A stretch of 64,000 nt of DNA, taken from positions 62,001 to 126,000 of the IMG/VR virus record IMGVR_UViG_3300029258_002750; one strand, 5' to 3'. The translations under genes were made by a program, and so were the position numbers. The notes under the pieces were generated by a model that worked only from the letters and a program-made list of their open reading frames with translations, was not told where the DNA came from and searched no databases. Position 1 is the first letter of the stretch. Each line of letters opens with the position of its first letter. This document shows positions 1 to 22,669 of this stretch, one piece after another.

Positions 1-785
1 AGCTCTTCATGGGCGAGAGTGCGGACAAGGAACCTTGCCCTGCCTGCTGCCCTGGCGCAGTTCGACACGTTCACATCGACCTGAGCACGAACCAGTGCGC
101 GACTGGCTTCTGTATGGGGCACGTGGCGGGTTCTGTCGAGGTGACCCGGCGCGACCCGGAGACGAACGAGCAGCGGCGGGAGGATGCCGTCGTTATCCAC
201 ATCGACTGCATCCTGCGGATCGTGGCGCCGGACGGCGGCGATGTGGATCACGGCGAGGTTCGCGGCCTGGTCTACAAGCTGATGAAGGGCGGGGTCCCGA
301 TCCGGTCGGTCTCGATGGACCAGTACCTAGCTCCCTCCAACCTCCAGATGTTCAAGCGCAAGGGACTCAGGACTGAGGAGATCGGCGAGCGGCGCTTCAA
401 GCTCAAGCCTTACATCACGACCAGGCAGGCTCTCTACGAGGGGCGCGTGATGTCCCCTGTGTCCGAGAATCTGTCGAACGAGCTGAAGTCGCTCGAGTTG
501 CACCCGTCCGGCAAGAAGGTGATCGTTCCCGCGAAGGGGTCGAAGGATCTGGCGGATGCGCTATGCGGCGTGGTCTACTACATCTCGGAGAACATGCGGG
601 CCGGGGTTGTCCTCGCGCCATCGCTGGGGGTATCCGGGAGCGCGAGACCAAGCGGTCCGCAGTGGAGTTCCGGCGGGAATATCGACTGGGGCGACGACGA
701 TGAGTACGATTATGCGCCTCCGCCTACGTCCGATGGCCCCGGCGGTGATGGTGGAGGGTTCTCGTCGTGGATCATTCTCGGCTGA
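1..785 (+). CDS. terL: Terminase large subunit, C-terminal nuclease domain (5'-truncated by window edge)
   Basis: RNase H-fold nuclease motifs SVSMDQY and KKVIVPAKGSKDLADAL (typical TerL C-terminal K-D-x-A-D-A); frame open from the window start; followed by putative head-protein genes. Confidence 0.75.
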   Translation, partial: LFMGESADKEPCPACCPGAVRHVHIDLSTNQCATGFCMGHVAGSVEVTRRDPETNEQRREDAVVIHIDCILRIVAPDGGDVDHGEVRGLVYKLMKGGVPIRSVSMDQYLAPSNLQMFKRKGLRTEEIGERRFKLKPYITTRQALYEGRVMSPVSENLSNELKSLELHPSGKKVIVPAKGSKDLADALCGVVYYISENMRAGVVLAPSLGVSGSARPSGPQWSSGGNIDWGDDDEYDYAPPPTSDGPGGDGGGFSSWIILG

Positions 786-1057
786 CTCGTAGGCCGCTCA
801 AGACCCTGAGCGAGGTCGCGACGGGCCGCGAGCCCCACAAGGCCGACCGTCTGACCAACCGAGTTCGACGGCTCGTGGACAAGTTTGCCTCCAGGCGGTT
901 CAACCGAGCTGGCTACAACCGCAAGGAGCGGGAGAACTACCACAAGCGGATCCCTCAGTCGCAGGACAAGCGTCGGCTCCACCCAGCTGACACCTCCGGC
1001 AAGAAGCGGGTCGCGCCCGAGAAGCGCGTCGGCGCGGGCAGGCTCCGCCGTCGATGA
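767..1057 (+). CDS. Small very basic protein with RRPLKTLSE motif
   Basis: ORF bridges terL and next gene (ATGA overlap at 1054); R/K-rich; motif shared with ORFs at 10087, 17474 and 42737. Confidence 0.55.
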   Translation: MDHSRLTRRPLKTLSEVATGREPHKADRLTNRVRRLVDKFASRRFNRAGYNRKERENYHKRIPQSQDKRRLHPADTSGKKRVAPEKRVGAGRLRRR

Positions 1058-1305
1058 GATGCCCTCGTTGCAAGCACCACGGCTCGAAGGTGACGAAGAC
1101 GACGCGCCCGATCGATGAGGGCATGTTCGAGTTCGGCACCCTGAAGAAGCGCGAGCGCCGGTGCGACGAGTGCAAGGGCCGGTTCTTTACCTACGAGATC
1201 CATGAGGATGCGTTTCGTAGAATGCTCACCCTTACTGAGGGTAAGCCTGTCCGCCGGTCGCTCCGAACGGGGGGCACGCCGAAGTACCGCAAGTCGCACG
1301 TGTAG
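1054..1305 (+). CDS. NrdR-like N-terminal zinc ribbon protein (no ATP-cone)
   Basis: MRCPRC...SKV...RERRCDECKGRFFTYE matches the NrdR Zn-ribbon pattern; only 83 aa. Confidence 0.65.
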   Translation: MRCPRCKHHGSKVTKTTRPIDEGMFEFGTLKKRERRCDECKGRFFTYEIHEDAFRRMLTLTEGKPVRRSLRTGGTPKYRKSHV

Positions 1306-1312
1306 GGGCAGC

Positions 1313-4300
1313 ATGAACTGGGCAACCCTGATCGAGGTCGAATGCGACAAGGACATCAAGATCAAGGATCCGACGCCCAAGCCCGAGGTGCAGGCGTCGC
1401 CGATCATCCTGGGTCGGGTCACGGCCGCGATCGAGCGCGGTCGTCAGCGGGTCGATGCTCAGGCCGCGAAGCTCGCTAAGGCCAAGGCGAAGGTAGGCAA
1501 AGCGAAGACGGACAAGGCGAAGCACAAGGCCGAGGTCTCGGCGGCCTGCGAAGCGCTCCGCGTGAAGGCGCGAGAGGCCGACCTGGAGTTCTCCCTCAAC
1601 AGGTGGAAGAACCTGGAGGTGATGGCGAAGGAGAACCTGGCGAAGGAGAAGGAGACGCGGGCCAACCTCATCGCCAAGGGCAAGCCCACGGACCACGTGG
1701 ACGAGACCATCGCGAAGATCGAGGCGTGGCTGCATTTCGGCGGTAGTGCGTCGAGCCACGGCCAGGATCACCTGGCCAACCACGGGAACGAGGACTTCAA
1801 GCCTGGGCCGATGCTCGGCATCTCCTACAACTACGGCAAGAGCAAACTGCTCGGGCCGGACGGCAACGAGTTCGACCCTATCTCGTGTTTCGAGACTGAG
1901 AAGGAGAAAGCAAAGACCGATGCGGTGATGACGGCCCTCGCGCCTGAGCCATCGCTCGAGCCCGCGACCGAGCCGGTCGTGGCTGGACCGAAGTCGGTCG
2001 ATGACCTGTCGGCCTCTGAAACAGCCAAGCTCAAGGCCGATCTCAAGACCGCTTTCCTCACCGCCACCAGCAAGGGAAACTTCCAGTGGACGCCTGGGGA
2101 GGTGTTCGAGAAGGCGGGAGTCATCCCGCCCCCGGCCGGAACCCTGAGCGTGTCCGTGGCCGAGCAGCACGCGAGCGCGCTGTACTACGCTGTCAGGGAT
2201 GAGGCCACGGTCAAATCGCTCGATGATCTCGACATCGAGGAGGCGACCAAGCTGGTCTCGGCGGCGTTCAAGGCTGTCTCAGATCAGATGAAGGCGGACG
2301 TTGCTGCGGGCGGGACGTTCAAGAAGATCGCGACCATCAAGGCGCTACGAGCGGCTAGCGTTGCCGCGCTCGGCGACAAGCGGCTCAATCTGAAGGTGGC
2401 GAAGACCTTCGTCGACCAGGCGGTCGAGAAGTGGTACTCGGTTCCGAAGCCCTACAACGCCTATACACCGGAAGACCAGGCCAAGATCAAGGCCAAGGCG
2501 AAGTCACTGGCGATCAAGAAGGCGTTCGTCGTTGCCGGTGTGCCGCAGGTGCCGGATGTCGCTACTCTCATCAAGCAGCAGCTCTCGGCTGACGGCCTGG
2601 GGATCTCCTCTGCGGCTGCGATGACACTGTCGGCTGCCACCATCGACGCGAACACGAACAAGGCGTTTGGCGCGCTTCCGGCAGACAAGCAGCAGGCGAT
2701 CCTGGCCGTGGCGCAGAAGGCGTCCGACAAGGGGCAGAGCGTCGTGGGCGCGCTCCAGCAGGCCGAGATCGCGCACCTCGATTCGGCCAGCATGAAGGAG
2801 GTTGCCGACAAGGTTGCGGCCAAGGCCGACGAGCCGGGCTTCCTGAAGGCGATCGAGAAGCACCTGAAGGACATCCCCGGCCACGACATCGTCCCCTTCC
2901 AGCCCGAGGCCGTCATCTCGCACATTGATCAGTTCGGCGAGAAGCCGTTCATCGCGCTGATGAGCGAGTACCACATTCCGAAGGTCAAAAGCACGCCGCT
3001 CGAAGGTCTCATCAAGACAAAGGCGATCGGTGTCGTCTCGAGCAGGTGGAGCCCCGAGAAGATCGCCAAGATCGTTCAGGACAACTGGGACTGGATGTAC
3101 GGCGAGCATAAGGCGAAGCCGAGCAAGGAGGTTGCGATCTCCTCGATCTCGAGTCTCTTCAGCCCGCTCCCCAGTCCGGGGGTTACCAAGGCGGGGGGCT
3201 GGCCCGAGGCGATCAAGGCGCTCACCGACAAGCACTTCACGGTATGGGTCGGTGATGTTCCCTGGCCCCCTTGGAGCGAGAAGTGGGACCAGGAGCACAA
3301 GAATCTGGCATCGAAGGAGGAGATCGACGCCTTCACTGATGAGGTGATGGCCGACCCGCAGTTCCTGTCGCCGGGCGTCATCCCCAGCGGTACCGCGCTC
3401 CACGCGAAGGTCAAGGCGTGGGCCGCCGATCATCTCGATGGGGACACGAACGCGATCGTCGATGCGCTCCTCGCGAAGAGCGCGAAGGCGACGATCGATA
3501 CCTCCTCGGAGGAGGAGCTTGGCGCAGCCAGCATCTCGATCAACGCGACCGAGACTGGCGATACCGAGCCGAAGCCGCTCCCAACGACACCAGCTCTGCC
3601 GACCGTCTCGGGCAAGACGAAGGTCACGAAGATCTCCAAGGCGCATCACCTGACCGGAGAGCAGAAGAAGCTGCTTGCCACGCTGGTCGCATCGGCTATC
3701 GGGAGCGGCGCGCCGTTCTCGAAAACCGGGAAGCTCAAGAGTCAGCTGGGCGGGGTGGCCGGGACCATCGCCAAGCAGTTCAAGGATGCGCACCTCGCGG
3801 TCGGGACCAAGCTCGCGATCGGCAAGCCGCTCGTGCTGGAGACACTCAAGAAGGGTCTTACCGGGATCAAGCACTCCGACTGGATGTCCTACCAGACCTA
3901 CAAGGCGCTCCCGGATGAAGCTATCGCGCAAGCGCTGACCACGTCCCAGCTCAACGCGCTCCAGTCGATGATCAGCGAGTGCTTCCTTCAGGAGACCCAC
4001 CAGAAGAAGAAGGGCGGCGGCTACTACGGCGGGCCGTTCGAGAACAAGAAGCAGAAGCAGTACTTCAACGAGCTGATCTCCAAATGCGAAGCGGTCGCGT
4101 CGGCTCCGGTCGAACTGGAAGCGGTGGCCGGACCAGGTGGCGAGGTCCACGGAAGCTCGCTGTCCGTGGTCGAGCTGTTCGGCATGAGCAAGCCGGACCT
4201 GGACGAGTACGCCGGTCTTGGTCCCGTGGCCGGTACGACGATGGCGCCTGCCATCGGCAAGGGGTGGACCAGCTCCAGCTCGGATCTTGACGACAGCGGC

Positions 4301-7300
4301 GGTTCCGAGGGGAGCACCAAGAAGTTCTTGTCGGCGACTCTCGACGGCAAGCAGCACACCGGAGCTGGCAAGGCTCCGGCCCAGTTCCTCTTCAAGCACG
4401 ACGGCTACAGGGCGCTCGGCGAGGCGGCAGCCAACCGGACTCAGGCTCTTCTCGGCTTGGGCGGTGTCGGCACGGACGGCTACGTCATGTCGCGCGGCGG
4501 CAAGACCGGCTTCATGCAGTTCTTCCGCGTCACCAAGAACCTCCGCCGCCGGTACGGCCATCACAGCAAGCCCTGGCTGGGTCTTCCGGGATCGGGCATG
4601 GCCGGTTCTCCCGAGGACGAGCGAAAGCGACTGGCGCAAGGTCTCCAGCTCGCGCTCGTGAGCAACTGGCTGGTCGACGATAAGGACGACCACGGTGGCA
4701 ACTACACGTTCGACGAGAACGACCAGGTCACCGGGATCGACCACGGGCAGAGCTGCAAGTTCTTCGACTCTGGCGGGACCCTGCTCTCCCACTGGGACTG
4801 GTCTACCGGCAAGATCGCCAACAAGGACAGCAAGGCTACGCTCGAGTCCAACAAGGGCTGGCCGAAGCGGATGCTGATGGACTGGGCGGCTGGCGCTGAC
4901 CTGGGTCCCGACAAGACCGAGATTCCTCTCCTGGCGCTGACGGATCCGGCGTTCGAGAAGATGATCCAGCGCGCCGAGGGTATCCCGGACGACGTCTACG
5001 ACAAGATGTGGCGGCCGTATGCGGAGGGCGCGGACGCGGCGAAGTCGCGCGACGGCGAGCAGCGGCTCGCGCGATACTCGCACAACCCGAAGGACCGGAC
5101 CGTCGAGGGCTTCATCGATGGGATGCAGCAGCGGCGCAAGACGATCCGCAAGCAGGTCGCCGACCTGTTCTCGATGCTGGCGAAGAAACGTGCTCAGGCG
5201 CTTGCCGCGCACGGGGACACGCGCCCGCTGCCAGAGATCGAGGCGGAGGTCCGCGAGCAGCTCGGTCTGGACAGGTTCGCAGCCGGTGGCGGCGCGATCA
5301 CCGACAAGCAGGCCGACAAGATGTCGCCGTCTGCCGAGGAGATCGCGGCCGGTGCCGAGGCCCCCGGCTGGGACGAGTCGAAGCTGCCCGAGTCGTCGCA
5401 TATGCCGACGTCGGAGACGATCGCCAAGTGGGGCGTCAAGGGCTACGACATGAGCGTCGGCGGCGACGCGATCAAGGGCGGCGCGGTGACATTCCGTCAG
5501 CTGGGGGAGGTACCGATCGCCCAGTTCATGCTGGATGGTCCGGCGCGCGCGACGCTCGAGGCGCGTCTCCCGGGTTTCGGCGGAACCGGCCCTCAGCCCC
5601 CGCCCAAGCCCGCCGACCCCGCGATTCCGACGTTCAAGGAGCCGCCGGTCCCGTCGTTCAGTCAGTCGCCGGAATCCCTGGCGACTACCGCTCTGACCGG
5701 CGACGACCCGCACAATTTCACCGGCATTGCGCTCAAGGGTCTGGCCGGGGATCGCCTGACGAAGATCGAGAAGTACGTCAACAAGTGGCGCGATGGAAAG
5801 CTGTCTCCGCCGAAGGGCTCGAAGTACTGGGTGCGCGGTCTCGAAGCCAGCCGGAAGATGAAGACCGATGCCGATCCGATCGTCGCGGCGGCCGGTGCCC
5901 ACTACGAGAAGGAGCTGCTCAAGTTCGGAGCCGAGGGGGGACCGGACGGGTTCACGTTCGCCGACCCCGCCACTGTTCCTGAGGAGGAGCGGCTCATCAA
6001 GCCGTTCGAGCCGACCGAGGAGCAGAAGGCCGCCCAGGAGGCTGCGAAGGCCAACGTCGAAGCGGCCCACAAGAAGGCCGTCGCGGATGCCAAGGTGGCG
6101 CACGACAAGCAGGTCGAGAAGATCAAGGCGGATCACGAGAAGGCCCTCGCCAACTGGCAGACGGCCATGAAGAAATTCGAGGAGGAGCAGGGTCCGACAT
6201 CAACACTTACTATCGCGAAGAAGATGGCCGGTGTGATGCAACCCGGGAACGCGAAGCACCACGCGGCGGACAACAAGACCGCTTCGATGGGCGCGGACTG
6301 GGATGGATCGTGGACTAAGTGGTACGGCGCGCCCGGCAACCACCAGGCGTCGTGGGAGATCGACCTGACCGACGTCGTGTCTCAGCTGGGTGCCGTGGCC
6401 ACCGGCGAGAAGGACAGCCGGTTCAAGATCGTCTACTCCCCCGGTACCCAGTCTTCTGGGAAGTCGGGCAAGCACACCGGGCTCGACGGCACGACGTTCG
6501 TCCAATTCCCAAAGGGATCAACAACCGAGCAGAACAAGGCGATGCTCAAGAAGGCGTTCGAGGTCTTGGGTATCGACGCGCGACCGGCGTCGGCCGAGGA
6601 CCATGAGCTGAACTACGTGCGCAAGATGGCGTGGCTGCTCGGGGTCGAGGGGGCCTCGGGAACCGCCGCAACCGACGACGCCCGGTGGCACGTGGTCGAA
6701 CCGTCCGGTGGTACCAGGAAGGAGCGGACCGACTTCTGGCTGAAGAAGCTCAAGAGCCACCTCGGTTACGATCCTCGCCATGCCCCGGAGCTGGACGATT
6801 ACGGGCGCCCCAAGACCGTGCCAGGCTCTCACGGTAAGGTCATCATGAAAGAGGGGCCGGACGGTGGTCCGGTGCCGAACCCCTACTACCAGCCGATCGC
6901 GGCCCACTCTGGTGGTCAGGTCTCGCATCGCCGACCGGACTTCACCGACGAAGAGATGGTCCACATGATGAAGGCGGGCCGTCAGGTATTCACTCAGCAC
7001 TCCGGCGCGGCGCGGAAGTCCAAGATCCTTCAGGGCATGTTCCTGTCCACGCGCGACAGGCACCTGAGCGGGATCGAGAAGCAGCTCGGCGCGTCAGAGA
7101 GCGGAGACCTGGCCTCCGGTGGAGGCATGGCCGCCTTCCTCTACAACCGGGAGACGGACCGGCTCCACCAGAAGGGGAACGTCAAGACGCAGCACCCGGT
7201 CCGCATGGTGGTTCACCCGGCCATCCTGCTCCGAACCAACAACTTCTCGGCCGCTGGCGACACGTTCGGCTCGAAGAAGAGTGGCTACCGTCACAAGACG

Positions 7301-7573
7301 CTCGCTGAGGCGACGCTGGTGGAGATCCTCGGTGCGCACAGTTCGACGGCGGAGCTGATGGTCGAGGGTGGACTGGACGTCTTCGAGTACGCGATGTTCT
7401 ACAAGGACGATGAGCCGGGGAAGCTGTGCGCCGCGCTGGCCGAGGCTGGGATCAAGAAGATCGGGATGCCGAAGAGGCCGTGCAAGCAGGTCATCAAGAA
7501 GAGCATCACCAAGAGCATGGTGAACAAGCTTCTCGACAAGAGCGCTGACGCGAAGGACTGGGCGACCGCATGA
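1313..7573 (+). CDS. Giant (~2,090 aa) multidomain protein with atypical PI3/PI4-kinase/HipA-like domain; probable virion-associated polyvalent protein
   Basis: Kinase motifs FLFK, GEAAA, DKDDHGGN and GIDHG at about 4380-4750; start MNWATLIE at 1313 preferred over the track start 1202, which lies inside the upstream gene. Confidence 0.7.
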   Translation: MNWATLIEVECDKDIKIKDPTPKPEVQASPIILGRVTAAIERGRQRVDAQAAKLAKAKAKVGKAKTDKAKHKAEVSAACEALRVKAREADLEFSLNRWKNLEVMAKENLAKEKETRANLIAKGKPTDHVDETIAKIEAWLHFGGSASSHGQDHLANHGNEDFKPGPMLGISYNYGKSKLLGPDGNEFDPISCFETEKEKAKTDAVMTALAPEPSLEPATEPVVAGPKSVDDLSASETAKLKADLKTAFLTATSKGNFQWTPGEVFEKAGVIPPPAGTLSVSVAEQHASALYYAVRDEATVKSLDDLDIEEATKLVSAAFKAVSDQMKADVAAGGTFKKIATIKALRAASVAALGDKRLNLKVAKTFVDQAVEKWYSVPKPYNAYTPEDQAKIKAKAKSLAIKKAFVVAGVPQVPDVATLIKQQLSADGLGISSAAAMTLSAATIDANTNKAFGALPADKQQAILAVAQKASDKGQSVVGALQQAEIAHLDSASMKEVADKVAAKADEPGFLKAIEKHLKDIPGHDIVPFQPEAVISHIDQFGEKPFIALMSEYHIPKVKSTPLEGLIKTKAIGVVSSRWSPEKIAKIVQDNWDWMYGEHKAKPSKEVAISSISSLFSPLPSPGVTKAGGWPEAIKALTDKHFTVWVGDVPWPPWSEKWDQEHKNLASKEEIDAFTDEVMADPQFLSPGVIPSGTALHAKVKAWAADHLDGDTNAIVDALLAKSAKATIDTSSEEELGAASISINATETGDTEPKPLPTTPALPTVSGKTKVTKISKAHHLTGEQKKLLATLVASAIGSGAPFSKTGKLKSQLGGVAGTIAKQFKDAHLAVGTKLAIGKPLVLETLKKGLTGIKHSDWMSYQTYKALPDEAIAQALTTSQLNALQSMISECFLQETHQKKKGGGYYGGPFENKKQKQYFNELISKCEAVASAPVELEAVAGPGGEVHGSSLSVVELFGMSKPDLDEYAGLGPVAGTTMAPAIGKGWTSSSSDLDDSGGSEGSTKKFLSATLDGKQHTGAGKAPAQFLFKHDGYRALGEAAANRTQALLGLGGVGTDGYVMSRGGKTGFMQFFRVTKNLRRRYGHHSKPWLGLPGSGMAGSPEDERKRLAQGLQLALVSNWLVDDKDDHGGNYTFDENDQVTGIDHGQSCKFFDSGGTLLSHWDWSTGKIANKDSKATLESNKGWPKRMLMDWAAGADLGPDKTEIPLLALTDPAFEKMIQRAEGIPDDVYDKMWRPYAEGADAAKSRDGEQRLARYSHNPKDRTVEGFIDGMQQRRKTIRKQVADLFSMLAKKRAQALAAHGDTRPLPEIEAEVREQLGLDRFAAGGGAITDKQADKMSPSAEEIAAGAEAPGWDESKLPESSHMPTSETIAKWGVKGYDMSVGGDAIKGGAVTFRQLGEVPIAQFMLDGPARATLEARLPGFGGTGPQPPPKPADPAIPTFKEPPVPSFSQSPESLATTALTGDDPHNFTGIALKGLAGDRLTKIEKYVNKWRDGKLSPPKGSKYWVRGLEASRKMKTDADPIVAAAGAHYEKELLKFGAEGGPDGFTFADPATVPEEERLIKPFEPTEEQKAAQEAAKANVEAAHKKAVADAKVAHDKQVEKIKADHEKALANWQTAMKKFEEEQGPTSTLTIAKKMAGVMQPGNAKHHAADNKTASMGADWDGSWTKWYGAPGNHQASWEIDLTDVVSQLGAVATGEKDSRFKIVYSPGTQSSGKSGKHTGLDGTTFVQFPKGSTTEQNKAMLKKAFEVLGIDARPASAEDHELNYVRKMAWLLGVEGASGTAATDDARWHVVEPSGGTRKERTDFWLKKLKSHLGYDPRHAPELDDYGRPKTVPGSHGKVIMKEGPDGGPVPNPYYQPIAAHSGGQVSHRRPDFTDEEMVHMMKAGRQVFTQHSGAARKSKILQGMFLSTRDRHLSGIEKQLGASESGDLASGGGMAAFLYNRETDRLHQKGNVKTQHPVRMVVHPAILLRTNNFSAAGDTFGSKKSGYRHKTLAEATLVEILGAHSSTAELMVEGGLDVFEYAMFYKDDEPGKLCAALAEAGIKKIGMPKRPCKQVIKKSITKSMVNKLLDKSADAKDWATA

Positions 7574-8307
7574 AGCTGGCCGATCTTCCCGAGCTGCTGC
7601 ACACGGGCAAGTTCTCCCTGATCCGCGCGTACCCGGAGATCGGGCGGGAGGATGAGTTGCTCGGCAACGTGTTCGATATCCTCGTCAAAAGGCGCGATGT
7701 CGTGGTGCTCGCGAGCCCAACCGCCGGGTCCGGCGAGCCGTGCCGGTCATACGGCTTCAGCGCATTCGAGGTGATGTCGACCAACGGCGGAGCGCTCGTG
7801 ACCGAGGCCATCGACTGGCCTGTGACCACCTGGCGGTTGCGGAAGCTCGAATCGCCCGAGGACATCGAGCTGTGGGACAGGGAGCACGACGTTTACGATG
7901 ATGTCGAGGATGAGGTCTTGGAAGCGGCCAAGGAGGTCTTCGCTGACCTGGCGGCCAGGCCCGCGCCGCCCGAGCCCTCCCAGCTCTCGGCGTTCGACTA
8001 CGTCCGATGGAGCGTGCTGACCGAGGACGGGTGGACGCCCGCCGGTGCTGTGGCCGTCAAGTCCGACCAGAGCGGGCTGGCTGTCGACAGTTTTGGTGGT
8101 TCCGAGGCGGATGCGCACTTCTGGGAGACCCGCTACACGTTCGTTCCCGAGGGTTTCCTGCGAGACATCAACCAGGCATCCGGCCGGGATGAGATGTTCT
8201 CGGAGCCCACATCGATCAAGGCTGCTTCGCTAGAGGAGGCGCTGGAGCGCGCCAAGTACCAGATCGCGAAGGAGCACTACGAGCAGACAGGAAGGAGTCT
8301 CTTCTGA
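7570..8307 (+). CDS. Hypothetical acidic protein
   Basis: ATGA overlap with upstream gene; codon usage like neighbours; no recognised motif. Confidence 0.6.
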   Translation: MKLADLPELLHTGKFSLIRAYPEIGREDELLGNVFDILVKRRDVVVLASPTAGSGEPCRSYGFSAFEVMSTNGGALVTEAIDWPVTTWRLRKLESPEDIELWDREHDVYDDVEDEVLEAAKEVFADLAARPAPPEPSQLSAFDYVRWSVLTEDGWTPAGAVAVKSDQSGLAVDSFGGSEADAHFWETRYTFVPEGFLRDINQASGRDEMFSEPTSIKAASLEEALERAKYQIAKEHYEQTGRSLF

Positions 8308-18829: not shown

Positions 18830-19012
18830 TGCCCCCCTGGAAGAGCGGCTGGTCAGCGCTGACCGATGGCAACGGAAACACGATCGCGTGCCTGTGTGGA
18901 TGCGGGCGCGCCTGTAACACGTACGAGTTCGACACAGGTGAGCCCCTCAGCATCGAGTGCTGGCAGGAGGGCTCGGCGAAGCGGTGCCGAGCGCACCGGG
19001 AGAGAGGGCAAC

Positions 19013-19789
19013 GTGGGTCCACGGGTTCTAGTGGTCGTCGCGGGGAACAAAGGACATGGCAAGGACGTGACGGCGGATGCGCTAGCCGAGCTGCTCCCGG
19101 ACGCGCGGCGGGATGCCTACGCAGCTCCGCTGAAGGTGTGCGTCCACCTGAAGACGGGGATCCCGATGGACGTGCTCAATGGGCCGCAGTCGGTGAAGGA
19201 GGACCCCAAGTTCGGACGTTACGGGCAGACCCCGCGTAAACTCATGCAGGACGAGGGTCAGGAGGCCCGGGAGCGGATCGGCCCGACCGTCTGGATGGAT
19301 CGGCTCGTAGAACGCACACGGGCCGCCCAGGAGCGCTGCACGATCGTCAGTGACGGACGACACCCAAACGAGGAGATCGTTGGTGTACGGGCCGCGCTGG
19401 GCTTCCACGGGCTTGTCCTGGCAGTTCGTGTGGTCCGTCAGAGCGTCCCCGTCGTCCGTGGCCACCCCTCCGAGGACAAGATCGCCGACGCCCCGGACTC
19501 CCTGTTCGACGTGATCGTCCGTAACGATGGAACTCTGGAGGACTTACGGGCGATGGTCCAGCAGGTCGCCGACCTGGCCGTGCTCCGCTCCAAGACGGGC
19601 GGCCGGAAGAAGGCCCCGGAGGGCTGGATCATCCGGTGCCCGAGGGGCGGGCGACGGGCCGAGCCGATCGAACTGGAGCAGACGGCGAGGATCACCGCCG
19701 CGCAGCCGATGATGCCGTGCCCGGGGTGCGGCTACCAGGACGAGCATACCGTCGAGCCGGTCAGCTACGACCTGATCGAGATCGTTTGA
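19013..19789 (+). CDS. Deoxynucleoside monophosphate kinase (phage dNMP kinase)
   Basis: P-loop AGNKGHGKD, AYAAPLK, TPRKLMQ..G, VSDGRHPNE; C-terminal Cys-rich extension. Confidence 0.85.
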   Translation: MGPRVLVVVAGNKGHGKDVTADALAELLPDARRDAYAAPLKVCVHLKTGIPMDVLNGPQSVKEDPKFGRYGQTPRKLMQDEGQEARERIGPTVWMDRLVERTRAAQERCTIVSDGRHPNEEIVGVRAALGFHGLVLAVRVVRQSVPVVRGHPSEDKIADAPDSLFDVIVRNDGTLEDLRAMVQQVADLAVLRSKTGGRKKAPEGWIIRCPRGGRRAEPIELEQTARITAAQPMMPCPGCGYQDEHTVEPVSYDLIEIV

Positions 19790-19915
19790 GTTAGCGAATC
19801 AGCGCTGATTTGGACGGCCGGTGCCCCCGTAGAGCGGGCAGCGATGTTCGGAAGACCTCGGTAGAATACGCCCTGCCGGTCATCCGGCGGTCCCTCTACC
19901 AACTATGGAGACCGT

Positions 19916-22669
19916 ATGTCGTCACCCGTAAGTGCTGTTGGTGATAAGACTTCTGCCGTACAGCTCAAGCCCTACTTCACCAAGACCGATGATCCCTTCG
20001 AGGGGATCGAGTGGGATCGTCGCCGAGCTGTGATCCAGAACGCGGACGGGACCGTCGTGTTCGAGATGGAGGACGTGGAGGTTCCCGCGAGCTGGAGCCA
20101 GCGCGCGACCGACATTGTCGTCTCGAAGTACTTCCGCAAGGGAGGCGTGCCCAAGACGAAGACCGAGACATCGGTTCGCCAGGTGGTGCACCGGATCGCC
20201 GATGCACTCTCATCGGCCGGGCAGCACCAGGGCTACTTCACACCGGAGACCGGCCGCATCTTCTACCGCGAGCTGGCGCACCTCCTCGTGAACCAGGTCG
20301 GCTGCTTCAACTCGCCGGTCCTGTTCAACGTCGGACTGGCCGAGAGCTACAACATCACCGGCGAGTCAGCTGGCAACTGGGCCTGGGTCGAATCGCTGGG
20401 CGAGGCGGTCCAGACGACCGACGGTTACTCGCGCGCTCAGGCTTCGGCCTGCTTCATCCGCTCAGTCGAGGACGACCTCATGTCAATCGCCGAGGGCATC
20501 AAGACCGAGATGCGCCTCTTCAAATACGGAAGCGGCACTGGAACCAATTTCTCCCGCCTGCGCGCGATCGGGGAACCGCTCTCCAGCGGCGGATCTTCGT
20601 CGGGCGTGATGAGCTTCTTGCGCGCGTACGATACGGCGGCCGGATCGGTCAAATCGGGCGGCGCAACGCGCCGGGCTGCGAAGATGGTAATCCTCGACGC
20701 CGACCACCCGGACGTCGAGCGGTTCATCGACTGGAAGGTGCAAGAGGAGAGGAAGGCGAAGGCGCTCATTGCTGCCGGGTTCTCCGGCGGCATCGACGGC
20801 GAGGCATACAGGACCGTCTCTGGGCAGAACGCGAACAACACGGTGCGGGTAACCGATGGCTTCATGCGCGCGACCGAGAAGGGCGATGAGTGGTCAACAC
20901 GGTTCCGCACGTCGGGCGAGGTTGCCACGAAGCTCGACGCGAAGAAGCTGCTCCGCAAGATCGCGTCGGCCGTCTGGGAGTGCGGCGACCCTGGCATCCA
21001 GTTCCACGACACGATCAACAAGTGGAATCCGACGCCGAACGCTGGGAAGATCAGGGCCTCGAACCCGTGCGGCGAGTTCATGTTCGTCGATGAGTCGGCC
21101 TGCAATCTGGCCAGCCTGAACCTGGTCAAGTTCCTCCATTCCGACGGCACGTTCGACATCGAGAGCTTCCGCCAGGCGTGCAGGGTTTTCATCCTCGCCC
21201 AGGAGATCATCGTCGACTACGCGAGCTACCCGACGAAGAAGATCGCCGAGAACAGCCACCGGCTCCGGCCCCTCGGCCTGGGCTACGCGAACCTCGGCGG
21301 TCTGCTCATGCGGATGGGGCTCCCTTACGACAGCGACGAGGGCCGTGCCGTCTGCTCGGCCATCACCGCGCTGATGAGCGGAACCGCCTGGGAGATGTCG
21401 GCCGAGATCGCGATGCGCGTCGGGCCGTTCACCGGCTTCGCGTTCAACAGGGACTCCATGCTCCGCGTCGGCCAGATGCACAAGGACGCGCTCGACGGCA
21501 TCCCGCAGAGTCCGATCCGTGACGAAGCGACACTCGCCTGGGAGCGCGCGCTTGACCTCGGTGGGCAGCACGGCTTCCGCAATGCGCAGTTGTCCTTGCT
21601 CGCCCCGACCGGGACCGTCTCGTTCCTGATGGACTGCGACACGACGGGGATCGAGCCGACCTACGCGCTGATCGCGCACAAGAAGCTCGCCGGTGGTGGG
21701 ACGATGAAGATCACCAGTGGCGCTGTGATCGAGGCTCTCCATGCGCTCGGCTACGAGCCGGACGCGCAGCGCGAGGTGGCCGAGTACATCGACGACAACG
21801 GGAAGATCGAGGGCGCGCCGCACGTCCGGCCGGAGCACTACCCGGTCTTCTCGTGTGCGACCGGCGAGGGCGCGATCACCCCGAAGGGCCACCTGGGCAT
21901 GATGGCCGCCGCGCAGCCGTTCCTCTGCGGTGGGATCTCCAAGACGTGCAACCTGCCGAAGAATGCGACCGTCGAGCAGATCGAGCAGCTCTACCGCGAC
22001 GCCTGGGAGATGGGGCTCAAGGCCGTGGCCGTGTTCCGTGCGGGCAGCAAGGGCTGCCAGGTGCTCACGTCGGGCCGGAAGAAGCGCCAGCCGGATGAGC
22101 CTGCGGCCGAGCGCGCTCAGGACGAGCAGGTCCGCGCGCGCCGTCGTCGCCACCGGCTACCGAAGCGCCGGACTGGCTTCACCCAGGAGGCAACGATCGG
22201 CGGGCACAAGGTCTACCTGCGGACCGGCGATTACGAGGACGGTTCCCTGGGCGAGATCTTCATCGACATGCACAAGGAGGGCGCGACGCTCCGCTCGCTC
22301 CTCAACACGGTGGCGATTTCCATCTCGTTGGGACTCCAACACGGCGTGCCGCTCGAGGAGTACGTGGACGCCTTTACGTGGACGCGCTTCCTTCCGGCCG
22401 GGCCGGTTGTCGGCCACGACCACGTCAAGACGGCGACCTCGATCATCGACTACATCTTCAAGGTGCTTGCGGTCGAGTACCTCGGCCGACACGACCTCGC
22501 CCACGTGCACCCGCTCAAGAGCAAAGGTGACGGCAGCGTAGAGCCGGTGCCGCCGACGAACGGTGCCTCCCGTGAGGCCCAGATCTGTCCGCGCTGTGGG
22601 GGCCTTACGCAGACGAGCGGAACGTGCAGCGTTTGCGTCTCGTGCGGAGAGACCACAGGCTGCTCCTAA
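19916..22669 (+). CDS. nrdJ: Class II (adenosylcobalamin-dependent) ribonucleotide reductase with C-terminal TSCPD domain and Zn ribbon
   Basis: FNSPV, SACF, GSGTG, RRAAKM, SNPCGE, APTGTVS..DCDTTGIEP, GGISKTCN; C-terminal CPRC...CSVCVSCGETTGCS. Confidence 0.95.
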   Translation: MSSPVSAVGDKTSAVQLKPYFTKTDDPFEGIEWDRRRAVIQNADGTVVFEMEDVEVPASWSQRATDIVVSKYFRKGGVPKTKTETSVRQVVHRIADALSSAGQHQGYFTPETGRIFYRELAHLLVNQVGCFNSPVLFNVGLAESYNITGESAGNWAWVESLGEAVQTTDGYSRAQASACFIRSVEDDLMSIAEGIKTEMRLFKYGSGTGTNFSRLRAIGEPLSSGGSSSGVMSFLRAYDTAAGSVKSGGATRRAAKMVILDADHPDVERFIDWKVQEERKAKALIAAGFSGGIDGEAYRTVSGQNANNTVRVTDGFMRATEKGDEWSTRFRTSGEVATKLDAKKLLRKIASAVWECGDPGIQFHDTINKWNPTPNAGKIRASNPCGEFMFVDESACNLASLNLVKFLHSDGTFDIESFRQACRVFILAQEIIVDYASYPTKKIAENSHRLRPLGLGYANLGGLLMRMGLPYDSDEGRAVCSAITALMSGTAWEMSAEIAMRVGPFTGFAFNRDSMLRVGQMHKDALDGIPQSPIRDEATLAWERALDLGGQHGFRNAQLSLLAPTGTVSFLMDCDTTGIEPTYALIAHKKLAGGGTMKITSGAVIEALHALGYEPDAQREVAEYIDDNGKIEGAPHVRPEHYPVFSCATGEGAITPKGHLGMMAAAQPFLCGGISKTCNLPKNATVEQIEQLYRDAWEMGLKAVAVFRAGSKGCQVLTSGRKKRQPDEPAAERAQDEQVRARRRRHRLPKRRTGFTQEATIGGHKVYLRTGDYEDGSLGEIFIDMHKEGATLRSLLNTVAISISLGLQHGVPLEEYVDAFTWTRFLPAGPVVGHDHVKTATSIIDYIFKVLAVEYLGRHDLAHVHPLKSKGDGSVEPVPPTNGASREAQICPRCGGLTQTSGTCSVCVSCGETTGCS

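Follow-up and report, generated by a model that had tools for sequence, protein, structure and literature searches.

The question raised by this locus is what a 224-kDa protein encoded beside the large terminase gene of a phage could do, and whether it acts from within the virion. The window, a stretch of 64,000 nucleotides covering positions 62,001-126,000 of IMG/VR record IMGVR_UViG_3300029258_002750, belongs to a single contig of 275,101 bp with direct terminal repeats, rated 100% complete in IMG/VR, which has a G+C content of ~65% and is the genome of an uncultivated T4-like jumbo phage. A reading made from the letters and translations of this window (hereafter, the sequence-only reading) had proposed that one giant gene encodes a polyvalent protein with an atypical kinase and, at its C-terminus, an ADP-ribosyltransferase-like (ART-like) domain. 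Two parts of this proposal are now well supported: residues 1000-1334 have HipA/PI3-4-kinase homology with predicted catalytic residues intact, and residues 1839-2086 are modelled as a DarT-like ART fold. That the giant protein is an Alt-like, head-packaged and ejected two-enzyme polyvalent effector is the reading we favour, with a confidence only somewhat above even.

The longest open reading frame in the region (1202..7573, plus strand) has a G+C content at third codon positions (GC3) of 0.85, as in real genes of this genome. The ATG at 1313 is considered the true start, since an AGGGG Shine-Dalgarno motif lies 5-9 nt before it, the last position of the zinc-ribbon gene before it is 1305, and in homologues translation begins at the corresponding methionine. 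The sequence-only reading had placed a single plus-strand gene at 1313-7573, which is correct, and had given its product 2,090 amino acids, where 2,086 are found; all the motifs it quoted were recovered by translation at the positions it claimed. Searching the whole giant protein against PDB sequences with phmmer yielded nothing useful, and the only match from blastn and tblastn searches against a phage collection was a mycobacteriophage kinase domain.

The giant protein is not a singleton. A word-indexed search returned four full-length homologues with 29-61% identity, and extending the search exhaustively with a profile of the kinase-like region brought the number to fourteen clusters of the same architecture, with 1,861-2,229 amino acids, plus one further cluster that corresponds to a 1,147-residue C-terminal half. 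In IMG/VR, the relatives are represented by fragmentary contigs of 23.7-121.8 kb with a CheckV completeness of 9-42%; given the ratio of length to completeness, the genomes of these relatives are estimated at ~260-290 kb.

The kinase-like region was the most informative starting point. A profile search with this domain reached 406 clusters at E<=1e-3, nearly all of them large multidomain proteins, and none of the four libraries searched contains a model for the domain itself. When 117 domain sequences were aligned, the sole invariant columns were K1028, D1125 and D1143, with W1119, H1127, Q1146, Y1236 and R1274 nearly invariant. The invariant columns match the K / D-x-H-x-x-N / I-D-x-G pattern of atypical kinases, and a conserved acidic residue, E1037, follows K1028. 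A Pfam scan of the domains of 48 relatives found HipA_C in 15 (best E-value 5.4e-8) and PI3_PI4_kinase in two. Against E. coli HipA, hhalign yielded a probability of 80% and an E-value of 1.4e-5 on the catalytic loop, aligning D1125, H1127 and N1130 on HipA residues D309, H311 and N314. A profile search of the PDB yielded weak matches (E 0.009-0.05), led by the atypical kinases Fam20 xylosylkinase, Vps34, PI4K2, HipA, LepB and PI4KA; in these, the catalytic loop was aligned on the DRHxxN of Vps34 and of the xylosylkinase, and D1143 on the IDFG of Vps34. The closest neighbours in protein-language-model space (scores of 0.90-0.96) are LepB_N, PI3_PI4_kinase, Fam20C, HipA_2 and actin-fragmin kinase clusters, and the structural models that the ESM Atlas has for the nearest cluster are similar to those of HipA and PI3K/PI4K clusters, with template modelling (TM) scores of 0.55-0.73. 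The kinase proposed from the letters is thus supported by homology, through the Pfam families found in relatives, the alignment on the HipA loop and the language-model neighbours.

The domains with which this kinase travels were counted among its 150 best domain relatives, using local jackhmmer searches. An N-terminal SPP1-gp7/MuF domain (search seeded with SPP1 gp7) was found in 54 of the 150, and one or more C-terminal ADPrib_exo_Tox domains (search seeded with the ART of gp53) in ~60. Some relatives contain the kinase domain twice, and one of 6,354 amino acids combines three ADPrib_exo_Tox copies with kinase domains. The protein gp53 of Mycobacterium phage prophiFSIL01-1, encoded after terL and portal, is annotated as a "minor capsid and ADP-ribosyltransferase fusion protein", and its residues 443-744 are matched by residues 961-1307 of the giant protein (BLASTP E 3e-12). 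A link between the giant protein and phage polyvalent head proteins is well supported by these results, and the term "polyvalent protein" used by the sequence-only reading fits, given that the kinase domain recurs in phage proteins of the MuF-kinase-ART type. Polyvalent proteins are a known theme of phage heads (PMC5512222; PMC9503650). The kinase treated in PMC5512222 is a different one, of the Ser/Thr/Tyr type without a C-lobe, from elements of Verrucomicrobia and Bacteroidetes; PMC5576092, which deals with MuF toxins, mentions no kinase, and no description of this HipA-like module was found in the literature searched.

For the C-terminal half, structure was more telling than sequence. An AlphaFold model of the last 747 residues, built on an alignment of 15 sequences, reached a predicted local distance difference test score (pLDDT) of 77 and a predicted TM score (pTM) of 0.67. 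With this full model, Foldseek retrieved nothing significant from the PDB, and in VIA-align, model residues 542-730 matched DarT, a Salmonella effector that binds NAD, and Tpt1, among coiled-coil noise. The signal cleared once residues 1839-2086 were folded alone (pTM 0.74): of 48,161 representative chains, 32 reached Z>=2 in VIA, nearly all of them ART folds. The top matches are DarT1 of E. coli (Z 9.2 over 160 residues) and the DarT proteins of Thermosipho (8.1), Thermus (7.7) and M. tuberculosis (7.3), followed by the Salmonella effector with NAD (6.3) and Tpt1 (5.4) and, lower, by mosquitocidal toxin, Scabin, OspC3, CopC, pierisin, heat-labile enterotoxin, pertussis toxin and PARPs. The top eight Foldseek matches in the PDB are all DarT, CopC or OspC3, with E-values of 0.15-1. 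Among AlphaFold Database (AFDB) clusters, the best matches (E 1e-7 to 3e-6, TM 0.55-0.60) are to C-terminal domains of uncharacterised proteins; lower matches include an SPP1 gp7 family head morphogenesis protein (E 3e-3), an extracellular contractile injection system (eCIS) protein (E 2.1e-2) and several DarT/DUF4433 clusters (E 8.5e-3 to 7.2e-2). A shape search of the ESM Atlas agrees with an ART fold for the last domain.

The ART-fold domain does not stand alone in databases. The preceding alpha/beta domain (residues 1635-1838), in which D1684, E1765, Y1768, R1770 and E1796 are invariant among the 15 sequences, co-occurs with it in uncharacterised proteins of 349-594 amino acids in AFDB clusters, the alignments spanning positions 291-722 and 363-725 of the larger model, and the whole module of ~750 residues was found in an AFDB protein of 717. 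A match of this middle domain to ADPrib_exo_Tox (hhalign E 0.036) was dismissed as weak.

Conservation in the last domain includes R1874, D1876, the motif [SA]-[TS]-E-x-R1916, G1920, S1928, D1932 and G1936-G1937, and then T1975, D1983, G1986, R1993, E1999 and E2004, with E2014 invariant in the 15 sequences. ADP-ribosyltransferases carry their catalytic glutamate where a strand begins after a long loop. In the model, strand 176-180 opens with E2014 and is preceded by a conserved loop of ~30 residues (D1983, G1986, R1993, E1999 and E2004); E2014 is considered the candidate catalytic glutamate because of this order of secondary-structure elements, rather than a superposition. In DarT1, the transferase glutamate is E152 (PMC11543638). 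The ADP-ribosyltransferase-like C-terminus that the sequence-only reading had anticipated with low confidence is upheld as a fold by VIA, Foldseek, AFDB and the Atlas, but not at the level of sequence, where no link to any ART family was found. Of the motifs it had quoted, FLSTRDR and the SESGDLASGGG loop are conserved; QHSG, which lies on the first core strand, is not, and neither is its histidine. The candidate catalytic E2014 lies outside the C-terminal stretch it had singled out.

The N-terminal part of the protein is of another kind, and raises the possibility that the whole is mainly structural. As the sequence-only reading had described, the first ~1,000 residues are rich in lysine and alanine (14.0% Ala, 10.9% Lys). 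Arginine accounts for 1.2% of residues 1-1000 (window positions 1313-4312), in a genome whose proteins usually have more arginine than lysine. The Lys/(Lys+Arg) ratio of the giant protein, 0.74, is the highest of 297 open reading frames, the genome median being 0.33, and the depletion of arginine is kept in all 14 homologues. It possibly reflects the avoidance of self-ADP-ribosylation on arginine, or constraints on an ejected protein. The N-terminal 960 residues have no meaningful neighbour in the ESM Atlas. A long, Lys-rich, Arg-poor and weakly conserved region, together with the long single helix in the C-terminal half, would suit a structural or assembly protein of a large head (core, scaffold or DNA-organising), in which the kinase and ART modules are inactive relics or binders; the ambiguity of the ART class triad and the lack of an ADP-ribose-reversing partner in this genome (no Macro or NADAR domain) point the same way. 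However, none of the 117 diverse sequences departs from the kinase residues K, D and D, and E2014 and several ART loop residues are invariant down to ~23% identity over the C-terminal 747 residues. Such conservation is typical of active sites, and we consider a mainly structural role improbable.

If the giant protein is an enzyme, the next question is where it acts, and the head of this phage provides the first clue. At 188-196 kb, the genome encodes a T4-type head module, with matches to Portal_T4 (E 1e-52), Peptidase_S77 (E 1.6e-8) and Gp23 (E 1e-55); the contig of a homologue with 31% identity also encodes Gp23 and S77. In T4, the gp21 protease cleaves after L/I-x-E, and capsid-targeting sequences of ten residues bring internal proteins into the prohead; Alt, which is an ADP-ribosyltransferase, has a propeptide of seven residues removed and is ejected with the DNA (PMC9026906). 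The giant protein begins with MNWATLIE, and its family with ..L-[LI]-x-E-x-[ED]-C. L-x-E is found at residues 6-8 in 11 of the 14 full-length homologues, this is the only [LI]-x-E in the protein that is conserved in at least nine of the 14, and the motif is unique in the genome.

Two observations on the head module itself may be added. The S77 (gp21-like) protease domain lies inside an open reading frame of 943 codons (genome positions 191916-194747) whose C-terminal part is long, Glu/Ala/Lys-rich and scaffold-like, which suggests a protease-scaffold fusion. The gp23-type capsid protein (genome positions 194762-196195) begins with MFTARGMLAE, with L-x-E at residues 8-10, and this start resembles a T4 capsid-targeting or cleavage motif.

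According to the favoured reading, the giant gene would be transcribed as one tight block with terL. The MNWATLIE tag would direct the product to the prohead core, where the gp21-family (S77) protease would remove it after L-I-E8, and a mature protein of ~223 kDa would be kept in the head and exit with the DNA at infection. In the host, the kinase domain (K1028, D1125/H1127/N1130 and D1143) would move phosphate from ATP to a host target, and the DarT-like domain (candidate E2014) would use NAD+ for the ADP-ribosylation of a protein or a nucleic acid of the host. Both acts would shut down or redirect host functions ahead of phage gene expression. We infer each step from packaging and cleavage to ejection, as well as the two enzymatic activities and what they act on. 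The "injected host-takeover factor" of the sequence-only reading is an inference of the same kind: the tag, the gp21-type protease and the arrangement with terL are circumstantial evidence in its favour, while the missing MuF domain and the distant head genes count against it.

Several results weigh against this reading. Regarding delivery, the head genes lie ~125 kb from the giant gene, and the neighbourhood is of the replication type, with genes for ParB, a UvsX-like recombinase, an exonuclease, a sigma-like factor, a deoxynucleoside monophosphate (dNMP) kinase and a ribonucleotide reductase. No MuF/VG15 domain was found in the N-terminus (hhalign probability <1%, no Pfam match), and MuF (PF04233) was not detected anywhere in the genome. 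On a residue-frequency estimate, L-x-E occurs by chance within the first ten residues of ~5% of proteins. Regarding enzymology, the giant protein has no match in Pfam (E<=1), PHROGs, NCBIfam or PADLOC, and the Foldseek E-values against the PDB given above are weak. Three C-terminal segments compared by hhalign with an alignment of 72 ADPrib_exo_Tox sequences showed no significant similarity (probability 0.1% in the test of the ART domain), and the profile of the last domain, searched against PDB sequences and 5.8 billion proteins, retrieved chance matches and one fragment. The conserved residues follow the order R1874, [SA]-[TS] at 1912-1913 with R1916, and E2014, and the ART class triad (R-S-E or H-Y-E) is ambiguous.

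The same domains might instead work unpackaged, as a cytoplasmic host-takeover or counter-defence enzyme comparable to T7 gp0.7 or T4 ModA/ModB, with the N-terminal motif serving folding, interaction or the use of the conserved Cys11. A neighbourhood of replication and nucleotide-metabolism genes, a large distance to the head module and the lack of a MuF domain are what this explanation would expect, and a size of 224 kDa is far above that of the T4 internal proteins and of Alt. Yet the giant gene is co-oriented and tightly packed with a packaging gene, terL, the same kinase domain is found elsewhere mainly in MuF head proteins, and the tag fits the specificity of a T4-type protease at the only conserved [LI]xE site. 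We would place the probability of an unpackaged enzyme well short of even.

The head-packaged effector that we favour draws part of its case from the locus, whose features are listed in Table 1. The open reading frame that ends at 785 matches annotated large terminases of Vibrio phages (tblastn, 31% identity over 81% of the length, E 3e-60), which confirms that the giant gene is next to terL, with two small genes intervening. From terL through the downstream genes, starts and stops overlap, the giant gene being tightly packed in the same orientation, and no promoter- or terminator-like site was found on the coding strand of this interval. The order is shared by three homologous loci: ParB, two genes, terL, a small gene, a small Zn-ribbon-type gene and the giant gene, then a gene of ~240 codons and one of ~340.

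The terminase itself is not of the T4 gp17 type. Its best matches are the terL of Vibrio, Streptomyces and Gordonia siphophages, the T4 gp17-type model (Terminase_6N) is absent from the genome, and terL lies ~125 kb away from the genes for the T4-type portal, protease and capsid protein. A phiCbK-like phage (PMC3556154) was considered, for the genome size, the G+C content and the distance between terL and portal, and was rejected because there is no tblastn match to any listed phage, no DUF4055 portal, and the head is of the T4 type.

The 83-residue protein encoded directly upstream of the giant gene, here and in related phages, also matches the N-terminal part of TIGR00244 (E 1.7e-8); it is a zinc ribbon alone, without the ATP-cone. 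Downstream, the 245-residue protein has a counterpart of 239-246 residues directly after the giant gene in the three homologous loci and no informative neighbour in the ESM Atlas, and the 315-residue protein has a weak match to mad2 of PADLOC (E 4.8e-6). Both downstream genes, as conserved neighbours, may encode functional partners of the giant protein. Farther on, an open reading frame of 559 codons at 10596-12275 matches DUF1391 and phrog_751 over residues 288-324, above the curated cut-off (E 1.4e-12), and the downstream open reading frames of 723 and 738 codons have no tblastn match. A block of unknown genes is followed, at 18866-22669, by those for the dNMP kinase and for ribonucleotide reductase (large subunit); given their presence, the region is partly nucleotide-metabolic.

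The coupling of the 245-codon gene suggests yet another explanation, in which the giant protein is a polymorphic-type toxin and the coupled product its immunity protein or chaperone, serving superinfection exclusion or competition rather than takeover. The ATGA-coupled gene is conserved in all four loci examined, MuF toxins usually precede small candidate immunity genes (PMC5576092), and the ART domain resembles C-terminal domains of eCIS, RHS and MuF proteins. Nevertheless, the 245-residue protein has no recognisable fold or family, and exceeds the <150 residues of typical immunity open reading frames (PMC5576092). In addition, the genome is that of a complete virus in which no integrase was seen in the parts examined, no dedicated search having been made, and the C-terminal domains are conserved, not swapped, among the 15 homologues. 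We regard this explanation as very improbable.

Table 1. Features of the giant gene and its surroundings, in window positions.
Feature	Position	Strand	Remarks
terL, 3' end	1..785 (whole gene: genome 60752-62785)	+	677-aa open reading frame; position shared by homologous loci
96-aa open reading frame	767..1057	+	GC3 0.80; small gene here in three homologous loci; no family match
NrdR-type zinc ribbon protein, 83 aa	1054..1305	+	Pfam Zn_ribbon_NrdR, E 6.9e-7
Giant gene	1313..7573	+	2,086 aa plus stop, 224 kDa; full-length homologues exist
Tag MNWATLIE-VEC, L-x-E at aa 6-8, conserved Cys11	1313..1345	+	candidate capsid-targeting propeptide/prohead-protease site
N-terminal region, aa 12-750	1346..3562	+	Lys/Ala-rich, Arg-poor, weakly conserved; no recognisable domain
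Pre-kinase region, aa 753-960	3569..4192	+	highest conservation in N-terminal half; no family found
HipA/PI3-4K-like atypical kinase domain, aa 1000-1334	4310..5314	+	profile search, hhalign, Atlas neighbours
FLFK	4385-4396	+	translation
K1028 in FLFK	4394..4396	+	candidate ATP-binding Lys (putative role); invariant (117 sequences)
GEAAA	4418-4432	+	translation
DKDDHGGN	4679-4702	+	translation
Predicted catalytic loop D1125-D-H1127-G-G-N1130	4685..4702	+	D1125 invariant, H1127 near-invariant
IDHG	4736-4747	+	translation
D1143 of IDHGQ	4739..4741	+	candidate metal-binding Asp (DFG equivalent); invariant
Small alpha/beta domain, aa 1353-1420	5369..5572	+	pLDDT mostly 86-95; conserved in 15 sequences; no fold match
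Pro-rich linker, aa 1421-1452	5573..5668	+	no secondary structure, lower model confidence
Helical region ending in a single helix of ~57 residues (aa 1569-1625)	5669..6187	+	model (helix at its residues 230-286); coiled-coil matches only
Alpha/beta domain, aa 1635-1838	6215..6826	+	model
ART-fold domain, DarT-like, aa 1839-2086	6827..7570	+	model (pTM 0.74), structure searches
QHSG	6995-7006	+	translation
FLSTRDR	7040-7060	+	translation
SESGDLASGGG	7094-7126	+	translation
FLY	7136-7144	+	translation
E2014	7352..7354	+	candidate catalytic Glu of ART fold, by position only; invariant in 15 sequences
245-aa gene	7570..8307	+	ATGA overlap with end of giant gene; no family match
S-adenosylmethionine (SAM)-methyltransferase-like gene, 315 aa	8307..9254	+	weak Methyltransf_23 and Methyltransf_12 matches; synteny conserved

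Polyvalent, Alt-like effectors packaged in the head are already known, as T4 Alt and the MuF fusions, although experimental examples are few. Apparently undescribed are the family of the giant protein, a DarT-like fold missed by sequence models, a T4-type tag in place of MuF, and the HipA-like module in MuF-ART proteins. The giant protein offers a testable case with three separable parts, namely the candidate eight-residue tag, the kinase and the ART fold. Given that the kinase domain hides in hundreds of phage proteins of the "minor capsid/ADP-ribosyltransferase" type, the study of a single member would help to annotate all the others. Should the ART target DNA or RNA in the manner of DarT, this would point to a new phage route to host arrest at injection.

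A more speculative synthesis can be drawn, to which, taken jointly, we attach a tentative and rather low probability. A lineage of T4-headed jumbo phages of ~270-290 kb would deliver a single 224-kDa protein with a HipA-like kinase and a DarT-like, possibly nucleic-acid-directed ART, using an Alt-like tag of eight residues rather than MuF. In MuF-ART minor capsid proteins, the kinase would be a widespread and so far unrecognised "injected kinase" module, and the depletion of arginine would reflect the avoidance of self-modification or passage through the tail.

Among known systems, DarT is the best structural match of the last domain, with Z-scores of 7.3-9.2 over 143-160 aligned residues and a conserved glutamate at the point of the fold where the transferase glutamate is expected. 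There is, however, no sequence similarity to the DarT family (PF14487) and, in comparison with DarTG, the complete 275-kb genome has neither a DarG macrodomain nor a NADAR partner, since Macro (PF01661) and NADAR (PF08719) are both absent from it. With HipA/HipT, the PI3/PI4 kinases and the Legionella LepB-type kinases, the giant protein has in common the D-x-H-x-x-N loop and, ~15-20 residues downstream, the aspartate of I-D-x-G. Unlike HipA-type kinases, it is a giant phage protein without a significant Pfam match and without HipB, HipS or another antitoxin context; to our knowledge, no HipA-type kinase has so far been shown to be virion-delivered. For HipA itself, PMC8262856 gives glutamyl-tRNA synthetase as the target.

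The MuF-kinase-ART proteins represented by gp53 have a homologous kinase, upstream of a C-terminal ART and encoded near terL, as in the giant protein. They start with MuF/VG15 and end in ADPrib_exo_Tox, neither of which is found by sequence in the giant protein, which has its own unique N-terminal part of 1,000 residues and a DarT-like ART fold. T7 gp0.7 is alike in being a phage kinase that modifies host proteins early in infection (PMC5512222). It differs in its kinase family, in not being virion-associated and in having no ART, a comparison drawn from the literature alone.

A further close parallel is T4 Alt, which has 682 amino acids. The two share the context of a T4-type head with a gp21-family protease, a short N-terminal propeptide up to L/I-x-E (seven residues in Alt, a candidate of eight here), an enzyme domain of the ART fold and a presumed early role in host takeover. 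The giant protein is three times larger and adds a kinase, and its ART domain has no sequence similarity to ARTs of the Alt/VIP2 type, Alt being placed in the R-S-E clade (PMC5512222). Packaging is proven for Alt and proposed for the giant protein.

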